This document shows positions 7,791-54,221 of a DNA stretch of 64,000 nt, in pieces. The notes under the pieces are model-generated. The model saw nothing but the letters and a program-made list of their open reading frames with translations. It made no database searches and had not been told where the DNA came from. The position numbers were made by a program, and so were the translations under genes. This DNA comes from Octopus bimaculoides (Eukaryota), in contig NC_068995.1 in NCBI RefSeq assembly GCF_001194135.2, forward strand, positions 50,092,852 through 50,156,851, written 5' to 3'. How positions within the stretch are numbered: position 1 is the first letter of the stretch; each line of letters starts with the position of its first letter.

Positions 7791-7804
7791 ATAACAATAA
7801 TAAT

Positions 7805-14357: not shown

Positions 14358-16691
14358 GGTTGGTGAGAGAAGGAATTATGAAGCTAATTAGATGTATAGT
14401 ACTCTACAGAGGTTAAATTGTAGGGTAATGGATTGGAGAGGTTCCAATACTGCTGAGACAAATTTTGCCCACCGCCCTTCCAAAGTTGATGAAGTTGCAG
14501 TCAAGTACTGGTGTTGATCTAATTGATTGTCTCTTTCTTCCAGATGTGTGGCATTTTGCTTATATTAGGAATAACTAATCAAAAGAAATCAAGATCCACA
14601 TTAATACAAAAGTATTAAAAAAAAAAAAAATGTGTGATCAATAAGTTTCAAGTGAAGATTAAGATCACCTTGCATGAATACAGATAGCATTAAAAAAATC
14701 TAATTTTGATTAATCTTGACTTTTAATTGAAGGCCATAATCAATTTAATCAACCTCAATACTTGACTGGTGCTAATTTCATTGCTTCTCTCTCACCAGAA
14801 GTAGGAAAGAAATTGTTCTAATCACAATATTTGATTACAAGGAGTAATCATCGAACATCATGTTAATAAAAATAGTTAGAGGAAGTCTCTGCATATGTTA
14901 TTTAAAAATAAATAATTTATTAAATAACTAAAATCCTTCAAATTTTATACAAAGCAAACAGGAAGGCCAAAAAAAAAAAAAAAATGGTGGTAGAAATATG
15001 TTGGCAATTATTCAACTCTAAAGATGAGATGAATTATCTGAAAATTCATTTCAAACATTCAATTTAAGTTCACTTAAATATTTCACTGTGTGGCTAAGCA
15101 CAGAAGATATCTAAATTTAACTTAGCTCTAATTTTAATACAAAAATACTTGCTATCTTATCCCTACCACAGATAGGACAAGGATATTATAATGGGCATCA
15201 CTACCCACTCCATCCATCAAATAGTTCTAACTACAGTTTTTTTTGTTTTTTTTTTCCTGTTTTAAATGGTTTGGTCTAGAGAAACCTTCCAGACATAGTG
15301 CATTGTATGTTCCTGAACAACTAACTGCAAGAAAAATATTGGCAGGGAAGAAATTGTAAAGATTTGAAGCTCTGGGAAAGAAAAACAAAATGTATAGTCC
15401 AGAATCGAAACAAAGTGGAATTGATCTCATGATCTACAAGCAGCTCTGTTCATGCCAGTCCTATTCTTTCTTAAATGATCATTTACAGAATTCCTTTTCA
15501 TTTAATGGTTTATCATAGGCATCACAGTCATTGTTGTAACTTTTACTTTTCCATGCTTGCATAGATCAGATGAGATTACTCTGGGGCAGAGTTTTCCATG
15601 GCCAGATATCCTTCCTGTTGCCAACCCTTACCTGTATCCAGGCAAGGCAATAAATCTCCCAGTGTATCGAACAACGGCCAGCCCGCACATGGTTACACGA
15701 ACAACTGGAAACAAACAGGACAGTCTAAATTTTGTTTGCAAAGATCGTGCATAGGTCAAGAAGCTTGGACACGTTTCACTGCAGTGGACAGTGAGGCATT
15801 TGAGTTACATTTACCTGTTTCACTCAGAAACCACAGGTCAACTTGAGCTAATAGCAGCAGACATTTGTCCAGCATACCATGCAGTCAGACTGATACCGAA
15901 ACCACGGGACTGGGAAGCAAATTGCACCTACATAAGTATGTTCTCCTGATTTACTACAATTTTGATATCAAGTGTGAATCTGTTTAACATATATTTAGAA
16001 TTCCACTAAAAACTTGTAATTTTAATTTCATCGGGATGATAAGTCTTAAGTTAAATTATTTCTAATTAAGATAAAATGGGAAAGAACTGCTTTAAAATGA
16101 AATTGGTGTTGTTTTGGTTGTTCCTTCTAACAATAGCTGCAATAGCCATATTTTACTTGTTTTATCAAGCAAGTGCAATTCACTTTAGCTGCTAGGCAGG
16201 CTGTTACTGTAAGACATGGCTTGCATAATAAAATAGCCTTTTTGTAAGAGTTGTTTTGACTATTTATAATGAACAACATTTGAATCTACACTGTTGAAAT
16301 AATACAAACATACGTGTCTTGCATAGCCAAAGCAACAACTACAAAGCACTTTCATACAGCGCAAGGAAGGATTAACAACTTGGATTTGATAAGATGTGAA
16401 TGTTGTGATGATATTCAATAGAATTTACATTTTAAGTAATTGTTTTCATCAAATTATGTATACTAATAATGATGGATTATTTCCTTTTGTAAGTAATTAT
16501 AATTTGAAAGAAGTTTAGTCCAGTTAAGATAATGATAAAGTGTAATCCAATAAGTAATCTGCTGTAGGATATCTTAAGAATGAATCAGATAAAAACAGCT
16601 TCTTCAATTTGTGTGAAAGGTGCTAATTTGTTATAAGAAAATTAAAGTTGATTTCCTCTTTCATTATTCATTATTCGAGAAGTTTAATTTT

Positions 16692-16796
16692 TCACAAACC
16701 AGAAACTGACAAAGACCAGAGTCCAATTGTACTCAACCAGATAAATTCTTCCAATTTATTCTTGTGTTTCATCTGAATATGTTCCAGGAAGCCATC
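16692..16796 (-). CDS. Bcl-2-family protein, terminal coding exon (end of BH2 + hydrophobic tail anchor): DGFLEHIQMKHKNKLEEFIWLSTIGLWSLSVSGL*
   Basis: Strong acceptor ttttattttccttaatgcag|GAT. DGFLEH continues the BH2 motif (compare Mcl-1 RGW|DGFVEFF) in phase 0 with the donor after TGG at 23173. C-terminus is hydrophobic. Confidence 0.8.
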   Translation of the reverse strand, partial: DGFLEHIQMKHKNKLEEFIWLSTIGLWSLSVSGL

Positions 16797-16940
16797 CTGC
16801 ATTAAGGAAAATAAAAACATATGAGAAAATAGAATACAAAAAATAGAAAAATATGCAATTTTGGAGACTAGAGTACTCTTAAAAAAAGGTACATCCCTCT
16901 TTTCCTCACAACAGAAGCTTAAGGTTGAAATAGGTAGCAT

Positions 16941-17100
16941 AACCCTTTAACATTCAGATTACTCTGCCAAGTATATTTATCTATTCACTGTTTTGAATTA
17001 ATCATACATTACCTCATGGCTTTGAGAATTCAATGTGACTTTTTATAATGACATTGTAGGGTAGGTGTGAGAGGCTAGATCTGGCTGATATAAATATAAA
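16941..17100 (+). mobile_element. Fragment of a dispersed repeat starting taaccctttaacattcagat (possible TTAA-type MITE end)
   Basis: Related segments at 57951-57985, 58265-58370 and 58930-58975 (gaattaatcatgcatt..., ttgtagggtaggtgtgaga). Confidence 0.4.
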
Positions 17101-17367
17101 ATATTTTCAACTTTCTAAAAGTTTAGCTCCCCACCCCCTATCTTGTTCTAACTAACAAAAAAAAAAAAAAAAAAAAAANNNNNNNNNNAAAGTCCTTTTT
17201 TTCAGATCACTCATTTTATTGTGGCACATTATGGTATAGAGTTTCTCCCTGTTGTGTTGGTAGCCCTGACAAAGTTGTAATATCACGTTTATAACCGCTC
17301 CATTTTTACAATGTTATGCTTTTTGTATACTTATTTATCAATGCCTTAGAACAAAATTTCGACTGGG

Positions 17368-17682
17368 ATACACTGGGATGGAAAATTGCTCCCAGCACTC
17401 AGAGGCATTGAAAAGGTTGATAGACTGGCAACAATAGTAAATTTTCAAGGGAAGGAGCCATTGTTGGGAGTCTCTGAAATTCTAACATCTTTAGGAGAAC
17501 AGCAAGCCATGGCCGTTTACCAAGCAGTGAAGAAATGGGGTATAACCGACAAAATTCAGGCACTTTGCTCTGATACGAAAGTAAGCAACACAGGTCGAGT
17601 GAATGATGCCAGTACAAATCTAGAAAAGTTGTTCAATCGCAACCTGTTGTACTTCCCTTGCCATCATGCTGACACTGTATAG
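17368..17682 (+). pseudogene. DDE DNA-transposase remnant (hAT-related, HWDGK type)
   Basis: In-frame IHWDGKLLP...EKVDRL...LLGV...GEQQAMAVY...WGITDKIQALCSDT..SNTGR...LLYFPCHH: two catalytic Asp motifs and CxxH; truncated on both sides. Family assignment is from recall of the motif. Confidence 0.75.
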
Positions 17683-19727
17683 TCCTTATTCATTTTGGAC
17701 ATCACCTGGACAATGTATACTATAATACGTTATCATCACAAGCCTCCAATTCCAACCAAAATTTATGTACAAAAGATCTGGCAACATTTAGAAAGTTGCA
17801 AATTTCTAAATCATTGTGGCTTGTATGTAAAGTAACTATGACTGCATGTCTTTTCATTTCTTGATTTAGCATGATAAATTGGAAGGTTTATCCAAAAAAA
17901 GAAATAGAAAAAAGATACATTAAATAATTTGAAGGTGTAATGAACTAACAATAAAATGTACTCAAATACCCCTCGCACCCTGTAGAAGACATTTGACCAA
18001 TGAGCTGCACAGTGGTACCAAATCCCAAAACCAGATAGTAACAGAAGGAATTTAATAACAAAATTTCTGTATTGACAAGGAATAGAACAAAGTGGGCAAC
18101 AGCAGTATAGATCTATACACACGTGTCATCAGCAAGCAAAACTACAAAATAACTAAACATTTTGAAAATAATCTAATGAGAATTTTTTAAAACGAACTTG
18201 TTGCAAAAAATGTTTTAACAAAGTCCCAAAATAAGGTGTGATGAGGGGAATTTATACTAGGAAAAAAAAAAACAAAGATGAAGAGGTAACATTTGAAACA
18301 CTTTTTAAATAGAATGGTCACAGTTGAAACTTTCAGAAAAATGCATTTTTTGCACTTCTCTGTGCTCTCAAGTGTATGCACATATGAGTGCAAATCCTAG
18401 TCTGTGCAAAGGACACAGACTGGTTATTTTCAAGTCTGAAAATTTTCTGTTTCAGCTTTGTGTGACCAGTGATTTTCTGAATGAAAAAAAAAAAAGAGTT
18501 TAGGCTCCGGTTTCAGTCCCACTGTGTGGCGCTTTTGACAAAGTATGCTCTAGCGCTTGGCCAACCGAAACCCTTTGAGTGGGTCTGGCAGACGGAAACT
18601 GAAAGCTTGTCATGCGCGCGAGAGAGAGAAAGACCACTGGTACCACTTGATAACCGGTGTTAGTTTGTTTACGTTCCTCACAACTGAGTAGTTCGGCAAA
18701 AAAGAACCATAGAATAAGTACCAGGTTTAGAAAAGAAAATTTACTGGGATCGATTCCCTAACATAGCTGCAACCTAATGACTGCAACAAAGGTAAAACAT
18801 CGGGAACGAGACATTTTCAGAGCTGGCTTTAGGATTTATTATACACTACAGTGAAAAACGTTCCACATATGGCCATTTCGTATATTATCTTGAGCGCTAT
18901 GTCTTGTTCTCGATTATGTACAGTGTCTTTTCTTTGTTAGACAGTAAGGTTATTTGGCTGTTGAGTCTAGCAGGTCGGGCAACCACAGAAACGCCCGTGC
19001 TGGTTCGTTTTTGCGTAGTTTGGCCCAAGTAACAAATAAATATAAAAGTATGTCAGCCAACCTGAAGAGAGAAGCGATTTGCCTGCTGCGTAAGAAGATA
19101 AATTGATATGCCAGTGTGTGGGTAGATGAGAATGCAAACGTTTCGGACCAAACCTCTAAGTAATATGATGATACAAAAATTCGTAATTGTTAACAGACTA
19201 TTCATTTTGGCATGAATGAGGAGAGGTCGGAAAGTATGACGTTAACACATTCAAGAGAATACGTGACTGACATCTCACAAGAAGGAAATTCTGCTTTACA
19301 CATGACATATAAACCCATCATAACTTTATTATTATTATTATTTTATTTTTTGAATTTTCAGAAATTTCTCGAGAATTTGTGTTCTACACACGACTATGAA
19401 ATTTGTTTAAGTTTTCGAAATTTTATAAAATTTTAAAAAATTATTTAAAATAGAGTCTGAATTTTGGGGCTTAAATCCCCAGTAATTGACCCATTAAATG
19501 CTCAGAGTAACGATTATATTCTAGGTTCTGTTGGGTAACCCGACTCTTCCCGTTTCAAAAATAAAGTCAATTTGGCAAGATTTCAAAGCGAAATTTGTAG
19601 CAATTTAAAAAATGCTTGAAATATCAAGTGACAGCTGTAATTAGATCTACATCTATTCAAAGGAGGATGTAAAAATGCTCAGAGCAAAGAAAAGGAAACG
19701 AAAATTCACAAATATGAATTTCTACTC

Positions 19728-19821
<94 letters not shown>

Positions 19822-21787
19822 ATGGGCGACACAATACATATTGTCGGATTATGGATTAAATATTTATATATTTATCTAGAGAGTAGTATAGTTTTCGTTA
19901 AATATTGCCTCGTGTGTGTGTGTGTTTTAAAGCTGAAAAACAATGGAAGTTATGAGAAATAAGGTTTAGATGCCTTCTTTTGGAAATTTCCAGAGCAATC
20001 AACACCTCTTCTCCGTAAATTTCCAGAAGGGATCCTTACTCTGAAATACTGAAATGTCAAGTGACAGGACTAACCATCGACCTGTACTTATAAATAGAAC
20101 TTTACTTAATTTACTATCATCGAAAATTGTGCGATAAGTGCTTAAAACCGATACAAAGAAGAAAAAAAAATCAACGAACTATTTACACTTGGTTTTAAAT
20201 AAATAATTCGATAAATTAGGTCGGTCAAAATGTATTAAAAAAAACATAATAGCAGCAATTAAAATAATTTGGATTATAGAATAATTTTACTCTTTGCAAC
20301 CAATTCCCAGAGTAAAATTGGAGACTAAATCCGGTTTGGTAGTCTGCAAGTCTGGTTTTAATTTGATAATGAATCTGCCCATCCCACGAACTAATGAAAT
20401 AATGGGAGAACTTCTACGTGGCAGCAATGACCTGCTAGAAATAGCAGCAAAGCCTCACTCAGTACACCTCTTAGAAAGAGAATAAGCTTGGTAATATGAT
20501 CTTGGATAGATTAAGATAGATATTCACAGTTGGAGCGGCTTTGACCGTAAGTAAGTCTGCACGATCAATGCTCAAACCGGAGCTAAACTGCGACAACAAT
20601 GGCCTTGTTAAAAACTACCACACCATGATGTGCTTGGTTCGCTCCACGTCACATATAATCGATATTCTTTGTGTGACTTCAGCTGAACTGACTTTTATAC
20701 TAAACAAATCGATAATCAAAGTATTGAAAGTCAAAGAAAATGATGAGAGTGTGCGTGTGTGCTTAGCAACAATAAACAAAAAGAGAGAGACAGAGAGAGA
20801 ATTGATGAAATATATATCAAGGAAAATGATTTCGCCAAAACTTTTAAACTTTATACATAAAAGATGAGCGAACAGCTTATATTGTCGTTTGACTTGTTAA
20901 AAACCGAAGTCCCTCAAACCAGTGTAACGTAGTCCGAGATATAGTGGAAAAAATAAATCAAGATAAAAAGGAAGACTGAAACAGCTTTATTGTCGGATTA
21001 TGATTCTAAATTTCTATTAAATATACCGACATTTAAAACTGGTTTGGTCAGAAAAAAAAAAGCAGCTATATCTCCATGGAATCACATCGTATTCTCTTTA
21101 AAAAAAAAAAAAGACTATAATAGACACGTCGGATCATCTATATCTTATACAACAAATTAAAAATAATATCAATTTCAATATATGACGGGGTGGCTTTATC
21201 TGGAAAGTCTAACACCATAGGACTGATCTAATAGGATGACTTGAAACAAAGCCACCACCACCAGATATAAAAAGAGAAAAGGAGAAACTAATTACACAGT
21301 TTAATTTGTATTGTGAATTTTTTTCCCCCAGTTAATTCTTTAAAAGAATTTAGATTGCCGATATGAATATATTGTGAGACACAATCAAGCAAGGTCGACA
21401 GCTGAATACTGTCAGCAACAATAATTAACAGTCACATATATAAAGTAACTGGGTATTAAGAGATTTCACTGCTATTTCAAGCAGGTCGAACGACTACGTT
21501 GAGGCCTCCTTTTGGTGAAAGAACAAATAAAAGGGGGTTTGTGTGGAAAGGAATATATAGTTTATTGTTATTGGTAATTATTTTGTCGGAAATGCGAAAT
21601 CGAACTGAGTAGGGTTTTAACTCCATAACAAAGCGAGGCGCCATAAATGACATTAATCCCCTGACATACTTCAATACTATTTGTATAATAATTAATAAGT
21701 CTTAGGGTAGCAAAAAATTAAGAAATTTAATTTACTACTCGTGGTGTAGCGAGAAAAAAATTAGTCAACAGACTATATATTATTCAT

Positions 21788-22007
21788 GTAAAATACATTG
21801 TACATTTAATACACATTAGAGATGCCCATAAAAGGACATCTGACCCGCTAGAAAGAGCAGCCAAAGCTCTACACCACAAATTTTTTATTCCTTTTCGAAA
21901 TTATCCCTAATTTTTTTGTGGTGTAGAGCTTTGGCTGCTCTTTCTAGCGGGTCAGATGTCCTTTTATGGGTATCTCTAATGTGTATTAAATGTACACTGT
22001 ATTTTAC
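21788..22007. repeat. Near-perfect inverted repeat, 93-bp arms, 34-nt loop
   Basis: Arm 21788-21880 is the reverse complement of 21915-22007 with 2 differences. Confidence 0.95.
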
Positions 22008-22034
22008 TATTTGTATAATAGATAATAAACTATA

Positions 22035-22159
22035 CAGGGTGTCCACAAAGTCTGGGTACATGGGGATTAACAAACTTTAAGAAATTATTATTTCTTATAT
22101 TTAATTGTTTATGTCTTGATTTTATTTACTCCATGTCCCCAGACTTTGTAGACACCCTG
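22035..22159. mobile_element. Tc1/mariner-type MITE (125 bp)
   Basis: 29-bp TIRs CAGGGTGTC(C/T)ACAAAGTCTGGG(T/G)ACATGG; TA on both sides. Confidence 0.9.
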
Positions 22160-23172
22160 TATTTGTATAATAGATAATATACTGTATAATTTTAGATACA
22201 GCATACAGAAACAAAAGTTTGTGTGAGTGAGAGATTTTCATATGAGAATAAAGATCTACAATATTTTCGCACTTGTATGTAACACCGTCAATTAATATAA
22301 ATTAAATAATTAGAACTGTACCGGTCCGTTTCTTTTTTTGTGATTTGTAAGAAAAAGTGTTAAATAATAAATTATATAATGCTATTGTAAAAAGAATTTT
22401 ACAGACAGACTTGCTACTAATGTTAATTTCTTTCAACTATAATATTTATATAAAGATTAACAACACCAATTCCGTTTATACTTTCATGATATATCTGGAA
22501 AGTATTTTTTATTCAATAAATTAAATGTGTTTATTTTCTTTTAAAACATGGGAGCAGAATTCTGTTTAAAGCACACCATATGACCTCTAATAGCATATCT
22601 CACAATCACCCCCATTTATTTATCAGTCTGACGTATTCAGATTTTTTAAATATCTTTCTTCCCCATTAACACATTTAATGGTCTATTTCTGGGATTTAAG
22701 CTAAAATTTAAAGACTGTTCGTATTTCAAACTGTGATTTTTTTTTTAAATTCGAAAAAGTGACAAAAAAACAAAAAACAACTTTAGTCTCTTTAACAGGC
22801 AAAGAGACCGATAGAATAAGTACTAGGCTTCCAAAGAATAAGTCCTGGGGTCGATTTGCTCGACTAAAGGCGGTGCCCCAGCATGGCCGCAGTCAAATGA
22901 CTGAAACAAGTAAAAGAATAAAAAAAAGAGTCGTGTGATTTTCTGTGTGTAGAATACAAATTCGTAAACATATTCTGAGAAGTCTATAAGATAGTTATGA
23001 GAGCTTATATGGCATGCTTTTAGTAAAAAATGTTTTAAAAAAAGCCTATACAATTCTCAGAACGATGTCTTTTGTTTACTAAATCAGATCACTATATTTT
23101 ATTTCACGTACAAAAATATATATATATATGTGTGAATTTAAAAAATATTTATATATAATAAATGAACCTCAC

Positions 23173-23688
23173 CCATCCGCTGTTATCATTTATCCAGGTG
23201 TCGATCTTGTGTTCTTTAAAGAGTTTTATCAAGATCTGGTTATACTGTTCCCATGAAAGGTCATGATGTTTGGATCGTTGATCTTCGGCCAAAACAGCCA
23301 ACATCGTGAAAACCATAGAGATACGACGCCAATGTAAATTTTTACGATCCTCCAGGATGGTCTCCACTACGCAACGGTACGCCTTTTGGATTGTTAAGTC
23401 ATCTGCAACTTCGTCTAACAATTGGGCAACATTTTTATACAACGCATCTCTATAAATGTTGTAAATTTCTAATACTGATTTCCTCATGCCTGCACAAATG
23501 TCGGATTCGGGTTGCGAAATGAAATGACCTTTATCGAAGTTCAACACCATGTCTTTGACCATTCTAGGCACCTCTTTTCTACAAGATTTCAAATTTTCTT
23601 CCTTATCCATGCGAATCACGGATTGAAGGGGGTGCATAACAGGCGAGGAGTTAATACTACAAAAGATATTCGTCAGGACAGAGACCAT
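23173..23688 (-). CDS. Divergent multi-BH Bcl-2-family protein (Mcl-1/A1-like architecture), main coding exon, 172 aa; 206 aa after splicing to 16796
   Basis: BH1-like ILEDRKNLHWRRISMVFTML; BH2-like IDTWINDNSGW; BH3-position helix ICAGMRKSVLEI. First ATG at 23688. Donor TGG|GTGAGG directly after the BH2 Trp codon, the conserved intron position in Bcl-2-family genes. Confidence 0.85.
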
Positions 23689-23794
23689 CTTCAGGGATAT
23701 TAACTGAACGCCTGTTATTTCTTTTGGGGGGAAACGATAATAACTCACTCAATGTAAGCTAAAATGACTTCAAAGTGTAATGAAAGCGCTCTCC

Positions 23795-24310: not shown

Positions 24311-25258
24311 NNNNNNNNNNNNNNNNNNNNNNNNNNNNNNNNNNNNNNNNNNNNNNNNNNNNNNNNNNNNNNNNNNNNNNNNNNNNNNNNNNNNNNNNNN
24401 NNNNNNNNNNNNNNNNNNNNNNNNNNNNNNNNNNNNNNNNNNNNNNNNNNNNNNNNNNNNNNNNNNNNNNNNNNNNNNNNNNNNNNNNNNNNNNNNNNNN
24501 NNNNNNNNNNNNNNNNNNNNNNNNNNNNNNNNNNNNNNNNNNNNNNNNNNNNNNNNNNNNNNNNNNNNNNNNNNNNNNNNNNNNNNNNNNNNNNNNNNNN
24601 NNNNNNNNNNNNNNNNNNNNNNNNNNNNNNNNNNNNNNNNNNNNNNNNNNNNNNNNNNNNNNNNNNNNNNNNNNNNNNNNNNNNNNNNNNNNNNNNNNNN
24701 NNNNNNNNNNNNNNNNNNNNNNNNNNNNNNNNNNNNNNNNNNNNNNNNNNNNNNNNNNNNNNNNNNNNNNNNNNNNNNNNNNNNNNNNNNNNNNNNNNNN
24801 NNNNNNNNNNNNNNNNNNNNNNNNNNNNNNNNNNNNNNNNNNNNNNNNNNNNNNNNNNNNNNNNNNNNNNNNNNNNNNNNNNNNNNNNNNNNNNNNNNNN
24901 NNNNNNNNNNNNNNNNNNNNNNNNNNNNNNNNNNNNNNNNNNNNNNNNNNNNNNNNNNNNNNNNNNNNNNNNNNNNNNNNNNNNNNNNNNNNNNNNNNNN
25001 NNNNNNNNNNNNNNNNNNNNNNNNNNNNNNNNNNNNNNNNNNNNNNNNNNNNNNNNNNNNNNNNNNNNNNNNNNNNNNNNNNNNNNNNNNNNNNNNNNNN
25101 NNNNNNNNNNNNNNNNNNNNNNNNNNNNNNNNNNNNNNNNNNNNNNNNNNNNNNNNNNNNNNNNNNNNNNNNNNNNNNNNNNNNNNNNNNNNNNNNNNNN
25201 NNNNNNNNNNNNNNNNNNNNNNNNNNNNNNNNNNNNNNNNNNNNNNNNNNNNNNNNNN
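24311..25258. other. Assembly gap (N run). Other gaps: 17179-17188, 32109-32154, 33145-33294, 41496-41850, 42531-42817, 48682-49629, 50537-50670, 52520-52691
   Basis: Runs of n in the sequence. Confidence 1.
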
Positions 25259-31451: not shown

Positions 31452-32219
31452 GTAAATAAAAATGAATATATTAAAAATTTTTTTCTCTCTAGAATCTAAT
31501 TTTTGAGCTAAGGAGCTGTCTTTTTCTTTTGAAGTTTATAAAATTTTATTTTTAAGCTAAAGAGTTTAAATTTATTAACCTTGAAACCACTCTTGGTTTT
31601 ATGATACAAACTTCATGTTTTAAAGTGGCCTACATTAAAATTTTCTGTTAGAATGTCATGTTAACTTGTGTTTCTAATATTAAGCTTATGACTGTGGCCA
31701 TGCTAGGGTGCTACCTTGAAGAACTTTTTCTCTTTTTTTTTTTTTAGTTGAACAAATTGACACCAGATTTTTGTTTTAAGTTTGATACTTATTTTATTGG
31801 TGCCTTTTACCGAACCGCTAAGTCACACCAGTTGTTAAGTGGTGGTGGGGAAAAACACTGACACATACACACCATACATTCATGTATATATATGTACACG
31901 GCCTTCTTTTCAGTTTCTGTCTACCAAATCCACTCATAGGGCTTTGGTCAGCTTGAGGCTATTGTAGAAGACACTTGCCCAAGGTGCCACACTGGGATTG
32001 ACCCTGGAACCCTGTAATTGGGAAGCAGACTTCTCACACATCTTCAAACTCAAATATGATGTCTTCAATATAGCATTTTTGAAAGAAAAGCTCTTCTACC
32101 CCCCCCCCNNNNNNNNNNNNNNNNNNNNNNNNNNNNNNNNNNNNNNNNNNNNNNTCTCTCTCTCTCTCTCTACATATATATATATATATATATATGAACA
32201 CATATGCCTGTATAGATGA

Positions 32220-32530
32220 AAGCAACTTTATTTAGCTTGGCATATCTTCTCAAGTACAGCAAAACGCTACATCTGCTGGTTCCTTGTCATTTCCTCAATG
32301 AAGCCCGGCATTCAAACATCCTTTCTCACCACTTTGTCCCACATCTTCCTGGGTCTGCCCCCTCCACAGATTCCCTCTGCTATTAGAGCTCGGCACTACT
32401 TTATGCAGCTGTCCTCATCCATATGCATCACATGACCAAACCACTGCAGCCTTCTCTCTTACATACAACATCTGATACCTTTTACACCCAATTTTCCTCT
32501 TAAATCATTTACACTCTGTCATGCATGCAC
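32220..32530 (-). mobile_element. RTE-clade LINE 3' fragment
   Basis: Minus-strand translation gives LQWFGHVMHMDEDSCIK*...GGGRPRKMWDKVVRKD, the typical RTE ORF2 C-terminus. Confidence 0.75.
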
Positions 32531-32805
32531 GCTACATTGAGTTTTGGACCAGTATTTTATGTATGCATAGAGTTAGTCATATTGATATAGCTTCAGGAAT
32601 GCTTGTTAGTTAATTTTTAAAGTTATCAAATTTGATGAGGATTTCAAAAAAACTATTTATGTTAGAAATGAGTTTTGACAATGTATCATGCAAGAAATGT
32701 AAGCTTCACATTCTACAGTGTTATCCATTTCTTTATTTTTGTAGGATTGACTTCTGAACAAATACTGTGTTATAACTACATATATATAGTTATATATATA
32801 TCTAT

Positions 32806-33081
32806 ATGTCTGGAGAAAATTGTTACGCGTGTTCTTCCCAAATGGCTAATCCTGCTGAACTGAATATGGCTCTTGAGCCAGTTAATTCTGGAAGTAGTTC
32901 AGAATCTAGTCCAGATGTCAACATATATGACCACTGTGGACAGATTCTTCGTCTCTTGGGCGACAGTTTTTATTGGATGACCTGTGGCAGAAAACTTCAG
33001 TTGATTGCCGACAAATTTTATTGTGTACAGATATTACTTCGCTTAACATTGCAAGATGCCATGCCCTATTCACCCATTTAA
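32806..33081 (+). CDS. Candidate BH3-only protein with two tandem BH3 motifs (BMF/Noxa-like), 91 aa
   Basis: CGQILRLLGDSFY (aa 44-56) and CGRKLQLIADKFY (aa 60-72) both fit L-x-x-x-[G/A]-D-x-F. Ser-rich N-terminus, hydrophobic tail. Acceptor tttctttatttttgtag| at 32744; first ATG of the exon is 32806, with an upstream in-frame TGA. Confidence 0.7.
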   Translation: MSGENCYACSSQMANPAELNMALEPVNSGSSSESSPDVNIYDHCGQILRLLGDSFYWMTCGRKLQLIADKFYCVQILLRLTLQDAMPYSPI

Positions 33082-33609
33082 GTATGGCTGTGAAATTTTT
33101 TTTAAGACTTGGCTGTTAGGGCATTTGGTTTTTTGGGGGGGCGGNNNNNNNNNNNNNNNNNNNNNNNNNNNNNNNNNNNNNNNNNNNNNNNNNNNNNNNN
33201 NNNNNNNNNNNNNNNNNNNNNNNNNNNNNNNNNNNNNNNNNNNNNNNNNNNNNNNNNNNNNNNNNNNNNNNNNNNNNNNNNNNNNNNNNNNNNNGGTGGG
33301 GGGGGGGGTCAATTAAAAAAAAAAATTCTTTTTGATATTTTTTTATCATTACAGTGTGAGAGAAAGAATCTTTCTCTGAGATGGTCTCCTGTTTTTAATA
33401 CCTAAGTATTTATGTATACTTAAAATTAATTTAAGAAAAAATTTCTGATATCCCTTCATTGGGGATCAGTGCTTTTTCTTTTTTTTTTTTTGGTTTTGTT
33501 TTTTTTTTTTTTGGATGAAAATATTTTTAATAGTGATATTCACTATTTAAAGTATGTAAATATGTGTAGCTCATCACCTATTTAATCACACTTTAATATT
33601 TTTACCGCT

Positions 33610-33830
33610 ACCAAGGTGGTAAGCTGGTAGAATCGTTTGCACACCAGGCAGAATCCTTGGCAACATTTTGTCCGGCTTTACATTCTGAATCCAAATTTCA
33701 CCAGGGTCAACTTTGCCTTTCATCCTTTCGGGGTCGATAAAATAAGTACCAGTTGAGTACTGGGGTCGATGTAATCGACTTAGCCCCCTCCTCCAAAATT
33801 GCTGGCCTTGTGCCAAAATTTGAAACCAAT
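33610..33830 (+). mobile_element. SINE family B (in the presumed 3'UTR of the BH3-only gene)
   Basis: ggtaagctggtagaatcgtt...gggtcaactttgcctttcatcctttcggggtcgataaaataagtaccag; further decayed copies at 35460-36280. Confidence 0.8.
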
Positions 33831-36800
33831 ATTGTTACCTCTATCTACTACTACCTTGCTTACTGGTAGATTATTATTAATTGAAACAACTATATTTTGC
33901 GTGTAGACTCAATAAAATACCATATATGATATTGAAATTACAAAAATGTTGTATGAAACATATGTAAACCAAGCTCATTTAATATTATCATACATAAATT
34001 TACATGTAACATCTTTTCTGTGTGAAGGCTTCTGCCTCTAATTGTTATGTACAATGGCTCTGCCACTAAAATTGTTACTAATGAGATTGTTGGTTAAATT
34101 AGTTTAAGATGCTTATACACATTAGCTGAAAATCATTGCCTTGTCAAATTGTTTTTAAGGGCAATTTTGTTGCTGAAATATTGCATCCTGTGAATATTTG
34201 ATCAACAGGAGAAATGATACGCAATGCTAATTTATTAAACCTTTTCTATTTTACTGTCCTGTGATATCTCTAATTTATTATTTGTATTTATTTTTAGTCA
34301 TGCTTTTTTTTTATATTTTATTTAAGTATTTCAATTCTGAGCTGCTGCTAACCTTCACATAAAATGATTTTATCTTGCACCAGTAAACTGTTTACATTTT
34401 TGCAGCAGTTCAACCACTAGGTTCGCCACCCCTTCCTCCAACGAATACCATATACTTGGTATGAAAGCTTTCAGTAATAAGTTGTAGTATCTCTTCCCAA
34501 AACACTTGTAACAAAGCTAAAATAGTCCCTGCTGCCTCTGAACAGAATATTCCCCATCCACCCCACTGACCTTTTACTGCTTTTCTTTCCCCACTCTGTC
34601 TCTTAAAAGCACTTACTAAATCATATTAGTCAGTCTTCCTTTTCTGTAACTTAATTTTTTTTAAAATCTTTAAAATGTTTATTAAAACCACTTCTATTGG
34701 TCGTTTCCCATTTTATCATCATTTAAAAACATATAAGATGTACTTGTTTATTGCCTTGACAGTGTTTACCGTTAGAAAAAAAAAAACAACCCAAAACAAT
34801 TCACCACCTTGGGTTGAAAAGTTGGGCATGCTGGGAAACCTCTCTAATGGCTATTGAGGCACGCCAGCACGCTTGTAGCGTTGCCATGGGTGAAGACAAG
34901 GCTGATGCACTGAAGCATGATTTCCCATGTGTTTGTTACGAACACTGATCTCACCAATTTCACTGTCATTGTTGTTCTTCTAACTAGGAAGAAAAAGGAA
35001 GCACAAGTATTGATTGTCCCCTACTCATATAGATTACTCGAACCAACGAACCAGCCAAGCACCAACACTTTCACTGAAAAGAATTGAGTCACTGGGCTTG
35101 TCATACAGTAATTCTCATGGCCAAGCAATGCTTGGAGTGGACTCCTGCTCTAGCCTTCTGTGAGCTTTGCATTGTGTGTTGCCTTAAAATGGTTATCTAA
35201 GAGAAATTACAAACTAGTCTAACTTCATTATAGAGTGGTAGACATTAAGAATGTTCAACCAGTAAATATTTATTCTACCAGCCCTAGTTTCTTCCAAATA
35301 TATTATGAAAATAACAAATACAAGCCACATATTTCATATTCATTTTTTACATCTTGGTCTGGACGAGGCAGCTGGCTGAAATGTTTTAAAAGTGTTCCAT
35401 GTCTAAAAGCATATCCTAAATACTTTTTATTGTTATTATTTATTGTTCTTATCATTAGGGCAGTGAACGGCGGTGAGTTGGCAGAATTGTTAGCATGCCA
35501 AAATGATTAGTAGTATTTTGTTTATCTTTATGTTCTGAGTTCAAATTCTGCTGAGGTCAACTTTGCCTTCCATCCTCTAGGAGTTGATGAAATAAATACC
35601 AGTTGAACACTGGGTCAATAAAATTGACTTATCTTGTCCCCTGAAAATGCTGGTCCTGTGCCAAAATTTGAAACCATTATTATTAGGGCATTGAGTTTGC
35701 AGAATCAATAGAGCATCAGAAAAATGGTTCTGGTCTTTTAAGTTCTGTCTTCAAGTCTTTCTGCAATTAACTTCACCTTTCAACCGTCCAAGGTTGAAAA
35801 AATATAGCACTAGCCAAACACTGAAGTTGATCTGATCAACTAATCCCTCCCCTCAAAACTAATGGCCTTATGCCTACATCAGAAACTACTATTGCCAGTG
35901 TGGGAGACTGACAGAGCCATAAACATGTCAGATTAAATACGTAGCAGTGTTTGTTCTGACTCTTTACATTCAGGGTTCAAATCCCACAAAGGTCAAGCTT
36001 TATCTTTCATCCCTCTGGGGTTGATGTGACTGTTTCTCTCCCCTAAAAAATTGATAACCTTGTTTCTAAATTAGAAACATTTGATATAACCAATAATAAG
36101 GATTAGCAATGGCCAAATTCGTAGTGTGTCCAAGAAACACTTCTTTGCAGTATTTAGTTAATGTCTCTTCATGTTCCCAGTTCAACTCCAGTCAATGAAA
36201 TAAGCATCAGTCAAGTATTGATTTTTTTTGTTGTTGTCTAAAGCTGCCCCAAAATTTGGGATCCAGTATCTGTGTTAGAAATCATAATTATAATCCTAAT
36301 TATGTTTGTTCCTTGTATTTAACTTGTTCACAATAAACAAAAAAAAAAAAATTTTAACTCTCTCAAACGTGTAGCTTAATTTGGATTAATTCTGAGATTT
36401 TATTTCAATAGCTTTTTCCCCCACAGCCAAATATGACATGTCTATGCCTGTTTTTGTTTTAATGTTTTTTTACATTCTAAGAAGTTTGGAAGATATGTTA
36501 ATTGTTCATCTGTCAAAACTTTTCACTTATTAACATAGGGCACAGGCATGGCCGTGTGGTTAGTAACTTTGCTTTGCAACGGCATCAGCTCTTTTAGACA
36601 ACTGTCTTCTGACACAGCCTTGAGAGTGATCTCTGGTTTGACAGAAGTTGTATCGAATTCTGCTGGAGTGATCATTCATTTTAATCCGTCTTTTGGTGTT
36701 AACTAACTCCACCACCTGACCCATGGTTACCTGTTAGTAGCGTTTACTATGTTGTAAGCATTTGGGTCAGGTTTCCAATTCAAGGAAAACTTTTCTATTT

Positions 36801-41343: not shown

Positions 41344-41862
41344 GAGTAAAAATAAATACAAAAAAGGTGGGTTTTTTGTATGATTGTGTATAGAGGAATA
41401 TATTATTTTGTTTAAAAGAGTTCCAACACTGTCTGTTTTTTATGTTTTATTTATATTCCTGCAGAACTAATGTGGGGTATAGAATATGGAATATANNNNN
41501 NNNNNNNNNNNNNNNNNNNNNNNNNNNNNNNNNNNNNNNNNNNNNNNNNNNNNNNNNNNNNNNNNNNNNNNNNNNNNNNNNNNNNNNNNNNNNNNNNNNN
41601 NNNNNNNNNNNNNNNNNNNNNNNNNNNNNNNNNNNNNNNNNNNNNNNNNNNNNNNNNNNNNNNNNNNNNNNNNNNNNNNNNNNNNNNNNNNNNNNNNNNN
41701 NNNNNNNNNNNNNNNNNNNNNNNNNNNNNNNNNNNNNNNNNNNNNNNNNNNNNNNNNNNNNNNNNNNNNNNNNNNNNNNNNNNNNNNNNNNNNNNNNNNN
41801 NNNNNNNNNNNNNNNNNNNNNNNNNNNNNNNNNNNNNNNNNNNNNNNNNNTATATATATATC

Positions 41863-42530: not shown

Positions 42531-42817
42531 NNNNNNNNNNNNNNNNNNNNNNNNNNNNNNNNNNNNNNNNNNNNNNNNNNNNNNNNNNNNNNNNNNNNNN
42601 NNNNNNNNNNNNNNNNNNNNNNNNNNNNNNNNNNNNNNNNNNNNNNNNNNNNNNNNNNNNNNNNNNNNNNNNNNNNNNNNNNNNNNNNNNNNNNNNNNNN
42701 NNNNNNNNNNNNNNNNNNNNNNNNNNNNNNNNNNNNNNNNNNNNNNNNNNNNNNNNNNNNNNNNNNNNNNNNNNNNNNNNNNNNNNNNNNNNNNNNNNNN
42801 NNNNNNNNNNNNNNNNN

Positions 42818-42889: not shown

Positions 42890-43320
42890 CTTTTATCAGT
42901 TTCAGTCATTTGACTGCGGCCATGCTGGAGCACTGCCTTAGAGGGTTTTAGTCGAAGAAATCGACCCCCCAGCACTTATTCTTTGTAAGCCTAATACTTG
43001 TTCTACTGGTCTCTTTTATTGAGCCACTAAGTTATGGTGACGTAAACACATCAACATTGGTTGTCAAGTGATGGTGGGAGAGACAAACACAGACACAAAG
43101 CTATAAATATAAACACACACATGAATACACACACACACACATGCATATATACAATGGGCTCCTTTCAGTTTCTGTCTACCAAATCCACTCACAAGGTTTT
43201 GGTTGGTTTGAGGCTATAGTAGAAAACACTTACGCAAGGTGCCATGCAGTGGGACTGAACCCGGCAACATGTGGTTGGGAACTAAGCTTCTTACCACACA
43301 GCCATGCTTGTGCTTATATA
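42890..43320 (-). mobile_element. SINE family A, near full length
   Basis: Same layout as 47390-47780 (-) and 60552-60905 (+). Confidence 0.8.
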
Positions 43321-43915
43321 GATGCCATGCTTGAGTAGAAGACCCATCAAGCCAAGTGAAACCATAGCCGTAGCAGACACTGGTGCCATGCAACTGGCAC
43401 CAATGCTGGTGGCATGTAAAAGCACCCATTACACTCTTGGAGTGGTTGGCATCAGGAAGAGCATCCAGTCGTAGAAGCCATGTCAAATCAGACTGGAGAC
43501 TGGTGCAGCCCCTCAGCTTACCAGTCCAACCCATGCCAGCATGGACAACAGACATTAAAAAGATGGTTATGATAATATATATCAATATCAGTATGTGCAT
43601 GCGTGTGCAAGCATGTGTGTGTGTGTATGCATGTGTGTGCATATGTGAGTGTATTTACAGATGTTTTGCTGAAGTTGCGTGCTACACAATGGTGGTGGTG
43701 TCATTTTCCCAGTTAGCAAATCATCTGCTGACTTTAAGCATGTGTAGACATGTGAAATAAGATATCTTTTACTTGTAAAAATGCCTCATCGAGATATTCA
43801 TCTAACTCATGCTAGTAATGAATGAATATATATATGTATACCCTTCTCCCTTAGTATAAATCTATGAAGATGAGACTTGAATATTCATAAAATAATAGTT
43901 AATATGCATATTCAC

Positions 43916-43981: not shown

Positions 43982-44289
43982 CTATAAATAAATAGAAGAA
44001 AGAAGCAAGTTTATTGTTAATACTAGTGGGAGAAAAACAACCAATAACAGCAAGAATGTTAATAGCAATAACAACAGTAGCTACAATAATATGCTCATGG
44101 AGGGAGATATAAATATGGTTGCTCAACCTGCAAGAAACTGTAGCTAAATCTCACTCATATCATAACTTACCATCTTAAAAAAAAATGCACTGATTTTTAG
44201 GTCATGAAAACCTAGAAACTTTTGAGAGAAGATGAAATAAATCATTTTTAACATTTGAACTTAAAGCAGATGAAGCTTGAGATAAAGGC

Positions 44290-44715
44290 TTCAAATTTTG
44301 GCACAAGTTGTTGGGGAGGTGGATGGTTGATAAAATTGACCCCAGTACTCAAATGGCACTTATATTATTGACCCCGAAAGAGATGAAAGGCAAAGTTGAC
44401 CTCAGCAGAATTTGAACTCAGAACGTAAAGTCGGATGAAATGCCATTAAGCATTTTGTTCGATGCGCTAACAATTCTGCCAGCTCGCCACCTTAGATAAC
44501 TTTTTCAAATTTTTGCACAATACCAGCAGCTTCAGGGAGGGGGGTAAGTCAATTACACCAACCCCAGTAGTCAACTGGTACTTATTTTATCGAGCCCGAA
44601 TTGGATGAAAGGCAAAGCCGCCCTCGGTGGAATTTGAACTGAGAACATAAAGACAGATGAAATGCCACTACGTATTTTGCCCAGCATGCTAATGCTTCTG
44701 CCAAGTCACTGCCTC
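44290..44715 (-). mobile_element. Two tandem SINE family B copies
   Basis: ggatgaaaggcaaag...gaatttgaact...ctgcca blocks occur twice. Confidence 0.8.
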
Positions 44716-45102
44716 AATAAAGCTATAAGTAATAGTGTGTAAATATTAGGTCAAAAACCCTTTGGATAAAAAAATAAAGTAAAAAACTGCCTGTGGATAG
44801 AGAAATTGAAAAGACTACTTTGGTCCAATAGTAGAACATCTGTCATGTTTATAGATATGGGTTTGTGTTCCATGGGCAGCCTTCAACTTTTTCTATCCAC
44901 AAGGGATTTTTAACCCAAAATTTACATACTATTATTTGTAGTTATGAGCAGTGAGTGTTATTTCTTTATTGCTTATGCTCGAAATGTATAGGAAATGGCT
45001 ATTATTTTCTTTAAACTTTGCTTTTGCAATCCCAGTAACAACATTTTGATACTACAATATTCTACAACATTCTAGATAGATTCAATGCTGAATAGACAAG
45101 AC

Positions 45103-45480: not shown

Positions 45481-47255
45481 GCAATCACAAGGTAGAAAAT
45501 TACATGGATCTGGTTGAGACTCCGATGAAAAACTGCAGCAGAATAGGCAGCAAGATGTCCCTGATAAATTGAAGGAAAACATGGGAGAATACTAAGGGAA
45601 TACTAAGCGTTTCTACCAGAATATGCTAGACTTAGAAGTCATTGCTAAGAAGTATTTAAAGAAAAATATGATGGCAGACTAATTTTGAGGGTTGATACAT
45701 AAAAGACCTCAAAAATGAAATCTTGCAAATCTACCCATTTCTTAACTCTAATGTTTGCTTTTATACAACTTAACTATAAATATGTTAAATTTGATTTATA
45801 TGTTGTTGTTTTTTTTTCTGAAAAATGTGCAAACACACAAGCAATGTGTAAATAAAAAGGAATAAAAAGTGGGTTACATAGTTTAATCTGATCCTTGATA
45901 CGTTAGTTGAAACATTAGCTGAAAGACAAAAACACATACTGTGGTAACAGTTGGAATGCTTTTCAAATCATAGCTCTTCTTGATCAAAGCTGACCTGGGG
46001 TTATATCAACCAGCAACAACAATAAGCAAAATACAGCCAAAGATAATTGTTGATATGACATGTAAATGTTTAGAAATTCAACAAAAAGTAAATATTTAGA
46101 CAGTTACTAAGATGTACGTAGAAGGGAGGGAAATGACAGGCTGATTAAAGGAAGAAAAATAACACAAATACAAAAAGAAGAAAAATCCTGCAGAACAAAG
46201 GGAAGAGACAGTGGTCTAAGTTAAGTAGTGAGGTGGGATGAAGGAGGCTGTAAGACAAGATAGAAGGAGGGAGGGTGGAAAGAAATGATAGGTTAACACT
46301 GAAGAATCTAATTGTATGTTAGTGAAGGATATAATTTACTAAATATTTTAAATTTCAGTTGTAAGTTGACCAAGTTAAAAATGTCCTGGGGAGATGATCC
46401 ATAAACTTAGCAAATTGGGTGTTGCCAAGCCCTAAAATTCACTCTATAATTGCCCATGGGCATATAGCGTAATGGTTATGCGTGTGGACTACTAACCCCA
46501 AGATTCCGAGTTCAATTCCAGGCAGTGCCTTGAATAAATAAATAAATAATAATAATAATAATAATAACATCAGCAAAAAAATACCTTAGGAATGAGAACC
46601 CAGGGTTGGGTTCAAAATTCTACCAGGAAACCTGATGAAGGCTGGAGAGTAAATAATGTAAATGATGTACAGAACTTTTGAACTAGAACAGTTTAAAATT
46701 CCCGAGAACTTTCAAGAACAGTCTAGAATTTACTAGAACATAATAGGTGCAGGCATGGCTGTATGGTGTAGTAAGAAGCTTGCTTCTCAACTACATAGTT
46801 CCAGGTTCAGTCCCACTGCACGGTACCTTGGGCAAGTGTCTTTTACAATAGCCTCAGGCCGACCAAAGCCTTGGGAGTGGATGGAAACTGAAAGAAGCCC
46901 GTCATATATATATGTGTCATAAAGCCTGCTGCTAGGTTGCTTGTGTTTGATTTACATGTTTTCTGTTTTTTATTCTAAGGTAGGGGGATGTGATTTGGTA
47001 GGGGGTAGATTTGTTTGATATTCCGGGCAGGTGAAACGAATGCATAAAGTCTTCAAAACTGGCTTGGGTTCCATTGTTACTATTTGTATTTCTCACATTA
47101 CATTATATTTACATCTTTTAGTTAAGCAAATTTTCTTTCTCATTTCTTTTTGTTTCATTTGCAATTGAAATAAACCTGAATGACTTGCTGTCAGGTGTTA
47201 ACAAAGATGCCATTGCAAAGCATTCACTTAATATTTTTTTCCCTTGAGCCGTGTG

Positions 47256-47389: not shown

Positions 47390-47780
47390 CCTATCTTTTA
47401 CTTGTTTCAGTCATTAGACTGCAGCCATGCTGGAGCACCACCTTGAAGAATTTTTAGTTGAATGTATCAACCCTAGTGTTTACTTTTTCTAAGCCTGGTA
47501 CTTATCCTATCAGTCTCTTTTGCCGAACCGCTAAGTTACGACGATGTAAACACACCAGCATCGGTTGTCAAGTGGTGGTGGAGGGACAAACACAGACACA
47601 AACACACACACGTATATACGGGCTTCTTTCAGTTTCTGTCTACCAAATCCACTCACAAGGCTTTGGTCGGCCCGAGGCTATAGTAGAAGACACTTGCCCA
47701 AGATGCCACGCAGTGGGACTGAACCCGGAACCATGTGGTTGGTAAGCAAACTACTTACCACACAGCCACTCCTGCGCCTA
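47390..47780 (-). mobile_element. SINE family A, near full length and little diverged
   Basis: Reverse complement: ggcgcaggagtggctgtgtggtaagtagtttgcttaccaaccacatggttccgggttcagtcccactgcgtggcatcttgggcaagtgtc... Confidence 0.85.
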
Positions 47781-51934: not shown

Positions 51935-52800
51935 ACGAAACATCACAAACATAAGATATGCAAATGATACAGTCTTACTAGCAGAATCAGAAAAGGAACT
52001 TCAGAGTCTTCTGGATGTAGAGGTCAGAGAAAATGAGAGGAAGGGTCTGTTCATAAATTGCAAGTGTATGATGGTGACAAAGAAGAGAAACCCAAAGTTC
52101 ATGCTGAAAGTGAACAATCAAATCATGAAGCAGGTACATTCTTTCAACTACCTTGGGACTTTGAGAATATAGAAGATGCAAGATGTGTGAAAGAGATCAA
52201 AAAACGAATATCGCCAACAAAAATCTACATTCTCAAAATTGCACAAGATCTTGGGAAACTGTACTCTGAGCATCAAGACCAAGATCCATATATTGAACTG
52301 CTATGTCTACCTTGTGTTAATGTATGGAAGTGAGGCATGGTCTATAACACCAGAAACGAGACGCAAAGAACTGTGGAATGTGGTTTTTAAGGCGAGTATT
52401 GAGGAGAGAATGGACAAAGTGTCTGATGGAGAAGTGATGATCCAGGCTACATTGAATAGGAAGCTGATTCATGAGATAATGGGCAGGCAACTTAGATTTC
52501 TTGGTCGTGTGATGAGGGANNNNNNNNNNNNNNNNNNNNNNNNNNNNNNNNNNNNNNNNNNNNNNNNNNNNNNNNNNNNNNNNNNNNNNNNNNNNNNNNN
52601 NNNNNNNNNNNNNNNNNNNNNNNNNNNNNNNNNNNNNNNNNNNNNNNNNNNNNNNNNNNNNNNNNNNNNNNNNNNNNNNNNNNNNNNNNNNTTGACGAAA
52701 TGGTTGGAAGAAAGAAGCATTGAACATCAGGAAGTGAAACTGTTGGAGAAAACAAAAAAACAGAGAATTGTGGCAAAACATGGTCACCTATGACCTACAT
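51935..52800 (+). mobile_element. RTE-clade LINE ORF2 remnant (frameshifted, gap inside)
   Basis: TNIRYANDTVLLAESEKELQSLLD (YADD-like), VHSFNYLG, LSIKTKIHILNCYV..VLMYGSEAW, RQLRFLGRVMR. Confidence 0.9.
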
Positions 52801-53439: not shown

Positions 53440-54147
53440 AATAAACAAATGCATAGGAAGCATATCAAATTATTCCTGGGAAGACACTGAGTAAATAATA
53501 AAAACTTATGAGCTTCATGGCCTGAAGTGAGTGGAAGGGTGAGTGGTTAGCAAAACCGGTTTAAGAGCATGAGAATAAAGGGATTATAATGAAGTTTTAT
53601 GCATTATTCAACAATCTTTTTTCAACCTATATCAACCAAAAGAAATATTAAAGTGAAACAGCATGAAAGTGCAACAAGGAAGCACATGATAAATTGCATG
53701 AAGCTCACACAGTTAATGCTTGTTAGCTTGCCGAGAGGAAGCGGGAGAGATCTAATGTTTCAGTCTAACGTCTCAGAAGGATACAAACAGTGTAGTAGAG
53801 AACCATGATTTTCTGCACGTTCTACTTTATAATATATGCCAAGTCTTGCTGACATGACAAATTGCACACGCTCCACACTGTAAAGGGGATTGGTGATACA
53901 AAGAACAACCTCTATCCTGTAAGCCAACCTCCTGAAAAAGAAAAACATTACATACACAACAAAGCTGATCAATGTAGGTGCAGCTATGGCTGTGTGGTAT
54001 AAGAAGTTTGCTTCCCAACTACATGGTTCTGGGTTCAGTTCCACACTGTGGAACCTTGGGCAAATATCTTCAACTATAGCCTCAGGCTGACCAAAGCCTT
54101 GTGAGTAGATCTGGTAGACAAAAACTAAAAGAAGCCCATTGTGTGTG

Positions 54148-54221
<74 letters not shown>

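Follow-up and report, generated by a model that had tools for sequence, protein, structure and literature searches.

A candidate coleoid BH3-only protein with two tandem BH3 motifs, encoded beside a Bcl-2-family gene in Octopus bimaculoides

Do molluscs possess a BH3-only protein? Li et al. (2017; PMC5550854) wrote that a BH3-only homologue had not been identified anywhere in the phylum Mollusca, from which they inferred that the upstream sensor tier might be missing from mitochondrial apoptosis in molluscs, and a survey of the squid Euprymna recovered Bnip3 only, with Bid absent (PMC9389742). The question is raised again by a 64,000-nucleotide stretch of the Octopus bimaculoides genome (NC_068995.1, positions 50,092,852 to 50,156,851, referred to here as the window), in which an original prediction, made from the DNA letters, had proposed that an open reading frame (ORF) at 32806..33081 on the forward strand encodes a small pro-apoptotic protein with two tandem BH3 motifs. 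On balance, the product of this ORF is probably a coleoid-specific BH3-only protein with tandem BH3 motifs, as suggested by the motifs themselves, their conservation between octopus and cuttlefish, and the Bcl-2-family gene that lies beside it.

The window is eukaryotic, with a base composition of about 33% GC, assembly gaps and microsatellites. The ORF translates as MSGENCYACSSQMANPAELNMALEPVNSGSSSESSPDVNIYDHCGQILRLLGDSFYWMTCGRKLQLIADKFYCVQILLRLTLQDAMPYSPI, and no second copy of it was found in the window by tblastn. The parts of the gene and of its product, all on the forward strand, are as follows.

32735..32744, forward strand: splice acceptor, a pyrimidine tract ending in tag (tttttgtag / GATTGACTTC, the stroke marking the border), homologous to the acceptor of decapod-side species A
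32745..32805, forward strand: 5' untranslated part of the coding exon, containing the conserved element TTGACT and, at 32773, an in-frame TAA
32806..33081, forward strand: complete coding sequence in a single coding exon, 91 amino acids and a stop codon
32806..32841, forward strand: conserved N-terminus M-[SA]-[GA]-E-x-C-x-x-C-S-[SA]-Q, in which M1, E4, C6, C9, S10 and Q12 are invariant (alignment A2)
32821-32832, forward strand: CxxC within this N-terminus, conserved from octopus to cuttlefish
32884..32916, forward strand: serine- and acid-rich segment NSGSSSESSPD, predicted to be disordered (composition and AlphaFold2)
32935..32973, forward strand: BH3 motif 1, CGQILRLLGDSFY, residues 44-56 (C44-Y56), with h1 C44, h2 L48, h3 L51, G52-D53 and h4 F55
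32974..32982, forward strand: linker W57-M58-T59 between the motifs, invariant in 5/5 sequences
32983..33021, forward strand: BH3 motif 2, CGRKLQLIADKFY, residues 60-72 (C60-Y72), with h1 C60, h2 L64, h3 I67, A68-D69 and h4 F71
33022..33051, forward strand: CVQILLRLTL, a truncated third repeat and hydrophobic tail (repeat family D2 and alignment A2)

The residues S, T, E, D, P, Q and N make up 53-62% of the N-terminal half in all species, with a net charge of -5 to -9, while the C-terminal half is about 50% hydrophobic and helix-prone, and the helical hydrophobic moment peaks on the two motifs. In an AlphaFold2 model of the monomer, residues 1-39 have a predicted local distance difference test score (pLDDT) below 50 and no secondary structure, and a single helix spans residues 40-85; with an overall pLDDT of 53 this is a model of low confidence, and is taken for secondary-structure tendency alone. 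The CxxC near the N-terminus is a feature foreign to known BH3-only proteins, and its role might lie in metal binding, redox chemistry or lipidation. As regards the surrounding DNA, which is AT-rich and repeat-rich, a TA microsatellite precedes the ORF, one repeat copy (~32383-32539) is separated from the coding exon downstream of it by about 200 nt, and an assembly gap (33145-33294) starts 64 nt past the stop codon, in the presumed 3' untranslated region (UTR).

The motif that defines BH3-only proteins (h1-S-x-x-L-x-x-h3-S'-D-z-h4) occurs twice in the translation, and its defining positions are either invariant or conservatively substituted in the five sequences compared. The spacing of 16 residues that had been proposed is borne out by the ORF, with the motifs starting exactly 16 codons (48 nt) apart, and so is the internal duplication of 48 nt, as the two units are identical at 27 of 48 positions, against 12.3 +/- 3.0 and a maximum of 23 among 8,611 other 48-mers of the window. 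Identity between the units falls on the first (11/16) and second (10/16) codon positions and not on the third (6/16), and the duplication is therefore ancient and preserved for the sake of the protein sequence, as opposed to a recent copying of DNA; both copies are already present in cuttlefish. The CVQILLRLTL described as a hydrophobic stretch does follow motif 2, and is further a third repeat, truncated, in which CVQILLRL resembles CGQILRL but the G/A-D pair is missing (the decapod form is [CY]LQL[LF]VQITT).

When the window was searched in six frames (127,996 residues) with a 12-residue BH3 pattern, [CILMVFYW][AGS]xxLxx[ILMVF][GAS]Dx[FLIMV], there were three matches, namely motif 1, motif 2 and the BH3 of the neighbouring Bcl-2-family gene. 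A position-specific scoring matrix (PSSM) built from 15 known BH3 segments, of which BMF was checked against PDB 8iqk_B, placed motif 2 first and motif 1 second among 47,383 windows, with scores of 17.8 and 12.6 bits, both of which are inside the range of 10-30 bits that known BH3s reach when left out of the matrix one at a time. Two further attributes of the class are present as well. BH1, BH2, BH4 and the Bcl-2 fold are lacking, with no Pfam Bcl-2 match in the five homologues and one helix plus disorder in the AlphaFold2 model, and the protein is short (91-100 amino acids) and largely disordered (residues 1-39 without structure), human BH3-only members being 54-198 amino acids long (PMC7022251).

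The original prediction depended on conservation of both motifs in related species, and this was found in Octopus vulgaris and in three distant species that include a cuttlefish. Locus L001 of O. vulgaris runs collinear with the window, to which it is about 92% identical, and its flanks carry indels; the ORF itself is 95.7% identical with zero indels, and the orthologue is intact. A HMMER scan of 1.84 billion cluster representatives yielded one true distant relative, P0004 (E = 2.7e-11), while P0005 and P0006, two large repeat proteins from the same scan, were rejected as low-complexity false positives; P0008 and P0009 were added by profile search. P0009 is encoded in reads of run ERR12945500, which according to a cuttlefish genome paper is Acanthosepion esculentum (Decapodiformes, Sepiida). 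Once upstream starts set by the gene callers had been corrected, the three distant homologues were found to be 94, 100 and 99 amino acids long, to begin with the same M-[SA]-[GA]-E-x-C-x-x-C-S-[SA]-Q, and to keep both motifs and the stop, with a core that reads CGQLLQVL[GA]DRFYWMT, then [CY]GRNL[KR][FL]LADRFY, then [CY]LQL[LF]VQITTGGNIT. Across the five sequences C44, G45, Q46, L48, L51, D53, F55 and Y56 are invariant in motif 1, as are G61, R62, L64, A68, D69, F71 and Y72 in motif 2. These columns coincide with the BH3-defining positions h1-h4, the small residue and the Asp, with substitutions falling on the solvent-side x positions (i+3, i+5, i+6 and i+10) and swaps of C and Y occurring at h1.

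Codons 1-26 hold six of the 12 differences between the ORF and its O. vulgaris orthologue, of which five are nonsynonymous, while the six in codons 27-91 are all synonymous (p ~1e-4 for a synonymous-site fraction of about 22%). Between Octopus and the three distant species synonymous sites are saturated (pS, the proportion of synonymous differences, ~0.95), and the motif region is still recognisable. Among the three non-octopus species the ratio of nonsynonymous to synonymous substitution rates (dN/dS), which had been suggested as a check, is 0.027-0.035 over the motif region, that is about 0.03, and 0.27-0.40 over the N-terminal part, and the indels in the decapod-side comparisons are all in-frame. 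As judged from these sequences, purifying selection is strong and is concentrated on the two motifs, and this is almost certainly a real, conserved coding gene. The synonymous rate dS itself was raised over the motif region relative to the N-terminal part, both for the octopus pair (0.29 against 0.04) and for species B and C (0.70 against 0.28), although these are small numbers.

The structure of the gene can be read from species A, a decapod-side species for which 15 sequencing runs supply contigs of about 1 kb, ten of which were read. In nine of the ten, exon 1 ends ...ccaacagtt / AACATTTGACTG upstream of the ATG, while in one (L008) the end of an intron with its acceptor, ...ctttacag / AACATTTGACTG, stands in its place, which identifies the nine as spliced mRNAs whose first exon is untranslated. 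The contigs of species A contain the entire ORF and, after it, over 600 nt of 3' UTR. The genomic contigs of the other two distant species (L012 and L013) have a pyrimidine tract and cag just upstream of TTTGACTG, and the octopus sequence tttttgtag / GATTGACT, which is identical in O. vulgaris, matches in position the acceptor placed by the spliced contigs; a TTTGACT upstream of the ATG is conserved in all species. The in-frame TAA at 32773 means that no upstream exon can extend the protein, which is therefore encoded whole in one exon. An untranslated first exon and a single coding exon, beginning at 32745, make up the gene. Searching the window and the decapod genomic loci with exon 1 of species A returned noise only.

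BH3-only genes had been described as easily missed outside vertebrates, which is only partly right for this one, since the exact 91-amino-acid protein is already present in UniRef and is labelled hypothetical in public databases. In O. vulgaris two isoforms are annotated, CAI9733864.1 (91 amino acids) and CAI9733865.1 (79 amino acids), both labelled "hypothetical predicted protein"; no contig on record carries the shorter one.

The neighbour, which the original prediction had not noticed, is encoded on the reverse strand and has these features.

14903..23690, reverse strand: two-exon Bcl-2-family gene, with exon 1 at 23690..23173 (coding from 23637) and exon 2 at 16796..14903 (stop codon TGA at ~16698)
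23430..23395, reverse strand: BH3 of this gene, VAQLLDEVADDL, a match to the BH3 pattern

The ORF at 23149..23748 on the reverse strand scores above the gathering cutoff of Pfam PF00452 (E = 1e-8), and the product of 187 amino acids has a BH3, a BH1 (HWRR), a BH2 (WINDNSGW) and, at its C-terminus, a hydrophobic anchor. The exons are borne out by L020, a transcript contig from O. bimaculoides that aligns to the window as two blocks, at 100% and 99.9%, with GT/AG borders, and the intron sits at the conserved position of the family, after the BH2 Trp. The best PDB matches, which are weak, are zebrafish BCL2L10 and Bcl-2-like 1, and an AlphaFold2 model from three sequences reached a pLDDT of 40.6, too low to be of use. 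The two genes are arranged head-to-head, with about 9.1 kb between the start of L020 (23690) and the ATG of the candidate (32806). In Octopus sinensis the orthologue of the neighbour is LOC115220385, annotated as uncharacterised, and its locus (L019) overlaps O. vulgaris L001 in the expected inverted orientation, with the genes about 12 kb apart. On our own estimate of about 10 Bcl-2 genes in some 2.7 Gb of genome, the probability that two such genes lie within about 12 kb of each other by chance is of the order of 1e-4, and their adjacency is thus very unlikely to be coincidental. From its sequence and position, the neighbour, a divergent Bcl-2 paralogue, is a candidate partner or evolutionary relative of the double-BH3 protein.

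Some further observations concern this part of the window. An assembly gap (24311-25258) lies between the two genes and could hide a promoter or a missing 5' exon. Three weak p53 response elements were found in the window, none of them between the two genes and none conserved in O. vulgaris. A-to-I editing at a Trp of the predicted protein P0010 (window ~16700) was considered and rejected, since both the genome and L020 have TGA there and the caller had read TGA as Trp; P0010 carries this Trp and seven extra residues beyond the true stop, and polymorphism was also ruled out. The real differences between L020 and the genome, at 15157 (A>G) and 15097 (T>C), are both in the 3' UTR. An ORF of 98 amino acids within the intron (17386-17682, forward strand) has no significant Pfam match and appears by eye to be a decayed mobile-element fragment.

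How far, then, do these findings identify a BH3-only protein, and what else could they reflect? The suspicion that the ORF arose by chance in non-coding DNA or in a repeat, with accidental motif matches, is natural for so short a frame with AT-rich, repeat-rich sequence around it and a TA microsatellite in front, but it fails on the wholly synonymous changes in codons 27-91 relative to O. vulgaris, on the low dN/dS and in-frame indels of the decapod-side species and on the lack of any other copy in the window. Given that the motif region is recognisable in spite of synonymous saturation and that dN/dS is low, a chance ORF is therefore to all intents excluded. Hardly better is the prospect that the ORF is no stand-alone gene but part of a larger protein, such as an exon that supplies the BH3 of a multi-motif Bcl-2-family member. 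BH3 motifs do occur in multi-motif members and such a gene is nearby; that gene, however, is on the opposite strand, with its own BH3 and a complete two-exon transcript, while the candidate has an in-frame TAA before its ATG within the exon, start and stop codons conserved in all species, and mRNA-like contigs in species A that hold the ORF whole, all of which make this reading very improbable.

A more serious alternative is that the gene encodes a conserved small cephalopod protein whose helices serve self-association or a hairpin, membrane contact or docking to something other than Bcl-2, in which case the likeness to BH3 would be a by-product of an L-x-x-L-[GA]-D-x-F repeat, and the cysteines, those of the CxxC included, might serve in metal binding or redox sensing. 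Several results lean towards it and weigh against a BH3-only protein. Pfam scans of the ORF and all five homologues, and PDB searches with the full protein, the five-sequence profile and both 26-mers, gave no matches at E ≤ 10, and there is thus no homology to BH3-only families at database level; BMF and BIM peptides were connected by the PDB search tool. As a short and degenerate motif, BH3 has many look-alikes that lack its function, and the matrix scores are sensitive to the training set, dropping for the octopus motifs once BMF and Noxa sequences are taken out, while the decapod motifs reach no more than 3-11 bits. S, K or R occupies the Z position in place of an acidic residue and the residue after h4 is Y, and this Y, the FYWMT linker and the N-terminal CxxC are invariant without being needed by a BH3 ligand; together with the conserved cysteines and the half-hydrophobic C-terminal half, they are unexplained by a simple BH3 ligand. 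In addition, no O. bimaculoides contig on record carries the exact protein, and transcription, which the original prediction had left to be checked, is therefore backed by spliced mRNA-like contigs in one decapod-side species and not by a transcript of the species of the window. By tblastn no Bcl-2 gene was found within +/-10 kb of the decapod homologues, where one decapod genomic contig was available, and synteny is therefore shown within Octopus alone. The neighbour itself has H-W-R-R in BH1 (~23340-23329, reverse strand), in place of the canonical N-W-G-R, invariantly in three octopod sequences. The BH1 Gly is critical for heterodimerisation in mammalian Bcl-2, and with this residue replaced the neighbour may be an atypical BH3 receptor or none. 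On the other side, every BH3-defining position, including the small residue and the Asp, has been kept across the split between octopus and cuttlefish, the adjacent Bcl-2-family gene is very unlikely to be there by chance, and the same pattern elsewhere in the window finds only a true Bcl-2-related sequence. These points make the non-BH3 protein the less probable of the two, and a tandem BH3-only protein the favoured reading.

If the protein is of the BH3-only type, the known systems closest to it are BMF and Noxa. Motif 2 is identical at 8 of 16 positions to the BMF BH3 in PDB 8iqk_B (HQAEVQIARKLQCIADQFHRLHVQQ), with E = 5e-5 for that single BLASTP comparison; octopus CGRKLQLIADKFY shares R-K-L-Q-x-I-A-D-x-F with BMF IARKLQCIADQFH, both have an "AD" instead of a "GD" core, and both proteins are small and without a Bcl-2 fold. 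The resemblance of motif 2 to BMF claimed at the outset therefore stands for the octopus, but it does not extend further, as motif 2 of the decapods ([CY]GRNL[KR][FL]LADRFY) lacks the BMF-like residues, which again counts against the BH3-only reading and makes the likeness octopus-specific, and no significant relationship to BMF, Noxa or other BH3-only proteins emerged from database searches. There is also no similarity to BMF beyond the motif, there are two motifs here against one in BMF, and the dynein-light-chain-type TQT motif is absent.

Mouse Noxa (PMAIP1) has about 100 residues and two BH3 motifs from an internal duplication, and human Noxa has a Cys at h1 and a Lys at the Z position (GDKL). 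The ...GDKVYC of mouse NoxaA resembles the ...ADKFYC of the octopus protein. The motifs of mouse Noxa are separated by about 50 residues and stem from a recent duplication restricted to rodents, whereas those of the octopus are 16 residues apart, probably on one helix, and their duplication predates the split between octopus and cuttlefish; the octopus protein additionally has the truncated third repeat and the N-terminal CxxC. By profile homology the candidate falls outside the BMF family (no Pfam match, and no phmmer match to PDB BMF peptides, at E ≤ 10), the Noxa/PMAIP1 family (no Pfam match at E ≤ 10, no PDB match) and the multi-motif family PF00452, whose BH1, BH2 and helical bundle are absent from the candidate and present in its neighbour. 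The protein would resemble BMF and Noxa in its working mode, as far as sequence can indicate, yet by profile tests it is outside both families.

Other invertebrate BH3-only proteins offer looser parallels. Those validated in schistosomes, within the Lophotrochozoa, are likewise short, lineage-restricted and recognised by BH3 alone, but there is no detectable homology to them, the sole related cluster among the 1.84 billion representatives being decapod-side. EGL-1 of Caenorhabditis elegans and the BH3-only proteins of Hydra are similarly small, intrinsically disordered, lineage-specific ligands of Bcl-2-fold proteins, but each carries one BH3 and is unrelated in sequence to the octopus protein. 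In cnidarian BH3-only genes the BH3 is on a single coding exon, as here (figure legend in PMC8998228). The same paper (Suraweera et al., 2022; PMC8998228) reports potential lophotrochozoan BH3-only sequences obtained by BLAST, without validation, and its Figure 5a has a potential O. bimaculoides entry, "Ob", which may be the present gene and would then further temper the view that such genes are easily missed. In its text there is no mention of a tandem motif, cross-coleoid conservation or Bcl-2 synteny, and no published description of a cephalopod tandem-BH3 protein was found in the literature.

As a BH3-only protein, the product of about 91-100 amino acids might work as follows. An acidic, serine-rich, disordered N-terminal half with the CxxC precedes a helix-prone C-terminal half made of 2.5 copies of a repeat of 13-16 residues, the first two of which are canonical BH3 motifs (h1-[G]-x-x-L-x-x-[LI]-[GA]-D-x-F-Y). 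Once induced or freed from restraint, the protein would insert one or both of its amphipathic BH3 helices into the hydrophobic groove of Bcl-2-fold proteins, where four hydrophobic residues would fill the pockets and D53 or D69 would pair with the BH1 arginine. Pro-survival members would in this way be neutralised, or Bak/Bax-like members activated, leading to mitochondrial apoptosis. With an offset of 16 residues the hydrophobic faces would be about 160 degrees apart on a continuous helix, and bivalent or alternating use is therefore conceivable on this geometric argument; the original suggestion that each motif may bind a different Bcl-2 paralogue is likewise conjectural. A bolder version would have the two BH3 helices, on roughly opposite sides, hold two Bcl-2-fold molecules or switch partners, with the CxxC and the h1 Cys as a redox or metal switch and with the HWRR neighbour as the other half of a co-evolving pair, together an independent cephalopod cell-death module, and this must be considered a long shot.

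The rest of the window consists in part of repeats and gaps. Short interspersed repeats of at least two families, with copies of about 150-400 nt that are 70-90% identical, are numerous here and also occur around the O. vulgaris locus. An ORF of 184 amino acids at 52239-52793 (forward strand) has no significant Pfam match and looks by eye like a decayed mobile-element fragment, and a low-complexity tract at 55740-56609 gives, on both strands, artificial Ser-, Leu-, Arg- and Phe-rich ORFs of up to 289 amino acids, which are simple sequence and not a gene. The repeat copies and gaps are located as follows.

7494-8023, 31774-32040, 33613-33837, 35466-35685, 43111-43400, 44287-44727: interspersed repeat copies
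46743-46917, 47392-47782, 53967-54194, 60548-60917, 62354-62578: interspersed repeat copies, continued
17179-17188, 24311-25258, 32109-32154, 33145-33294, 41496-41850: assembly gaps (runs of N)
42531-42817, 48682-49628, 50537-50670, 52520-52691: assembly gaps (runs of N), continued

From sequence and genomic position, the gene is a strong candidate for the cell-death trigger that has been said to be missing in molluscs. Because conservation from octopus to cuttlefish, selection on the BH3 residues and adjacency to a Bcl-2 gene come together at this locus, the question is directly testable. If confirmed, it would mean that molluscs possess the full tripartite Bcl-2 system, and that a tandem-BH3 architecture otherwise known from rodent Noxa alone is ancient in this lineage. 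It would also provide a handle on regulated cell death in cephalopods, in development, in symbiosis-driven morphogenesis and in post-reproductive senescence.

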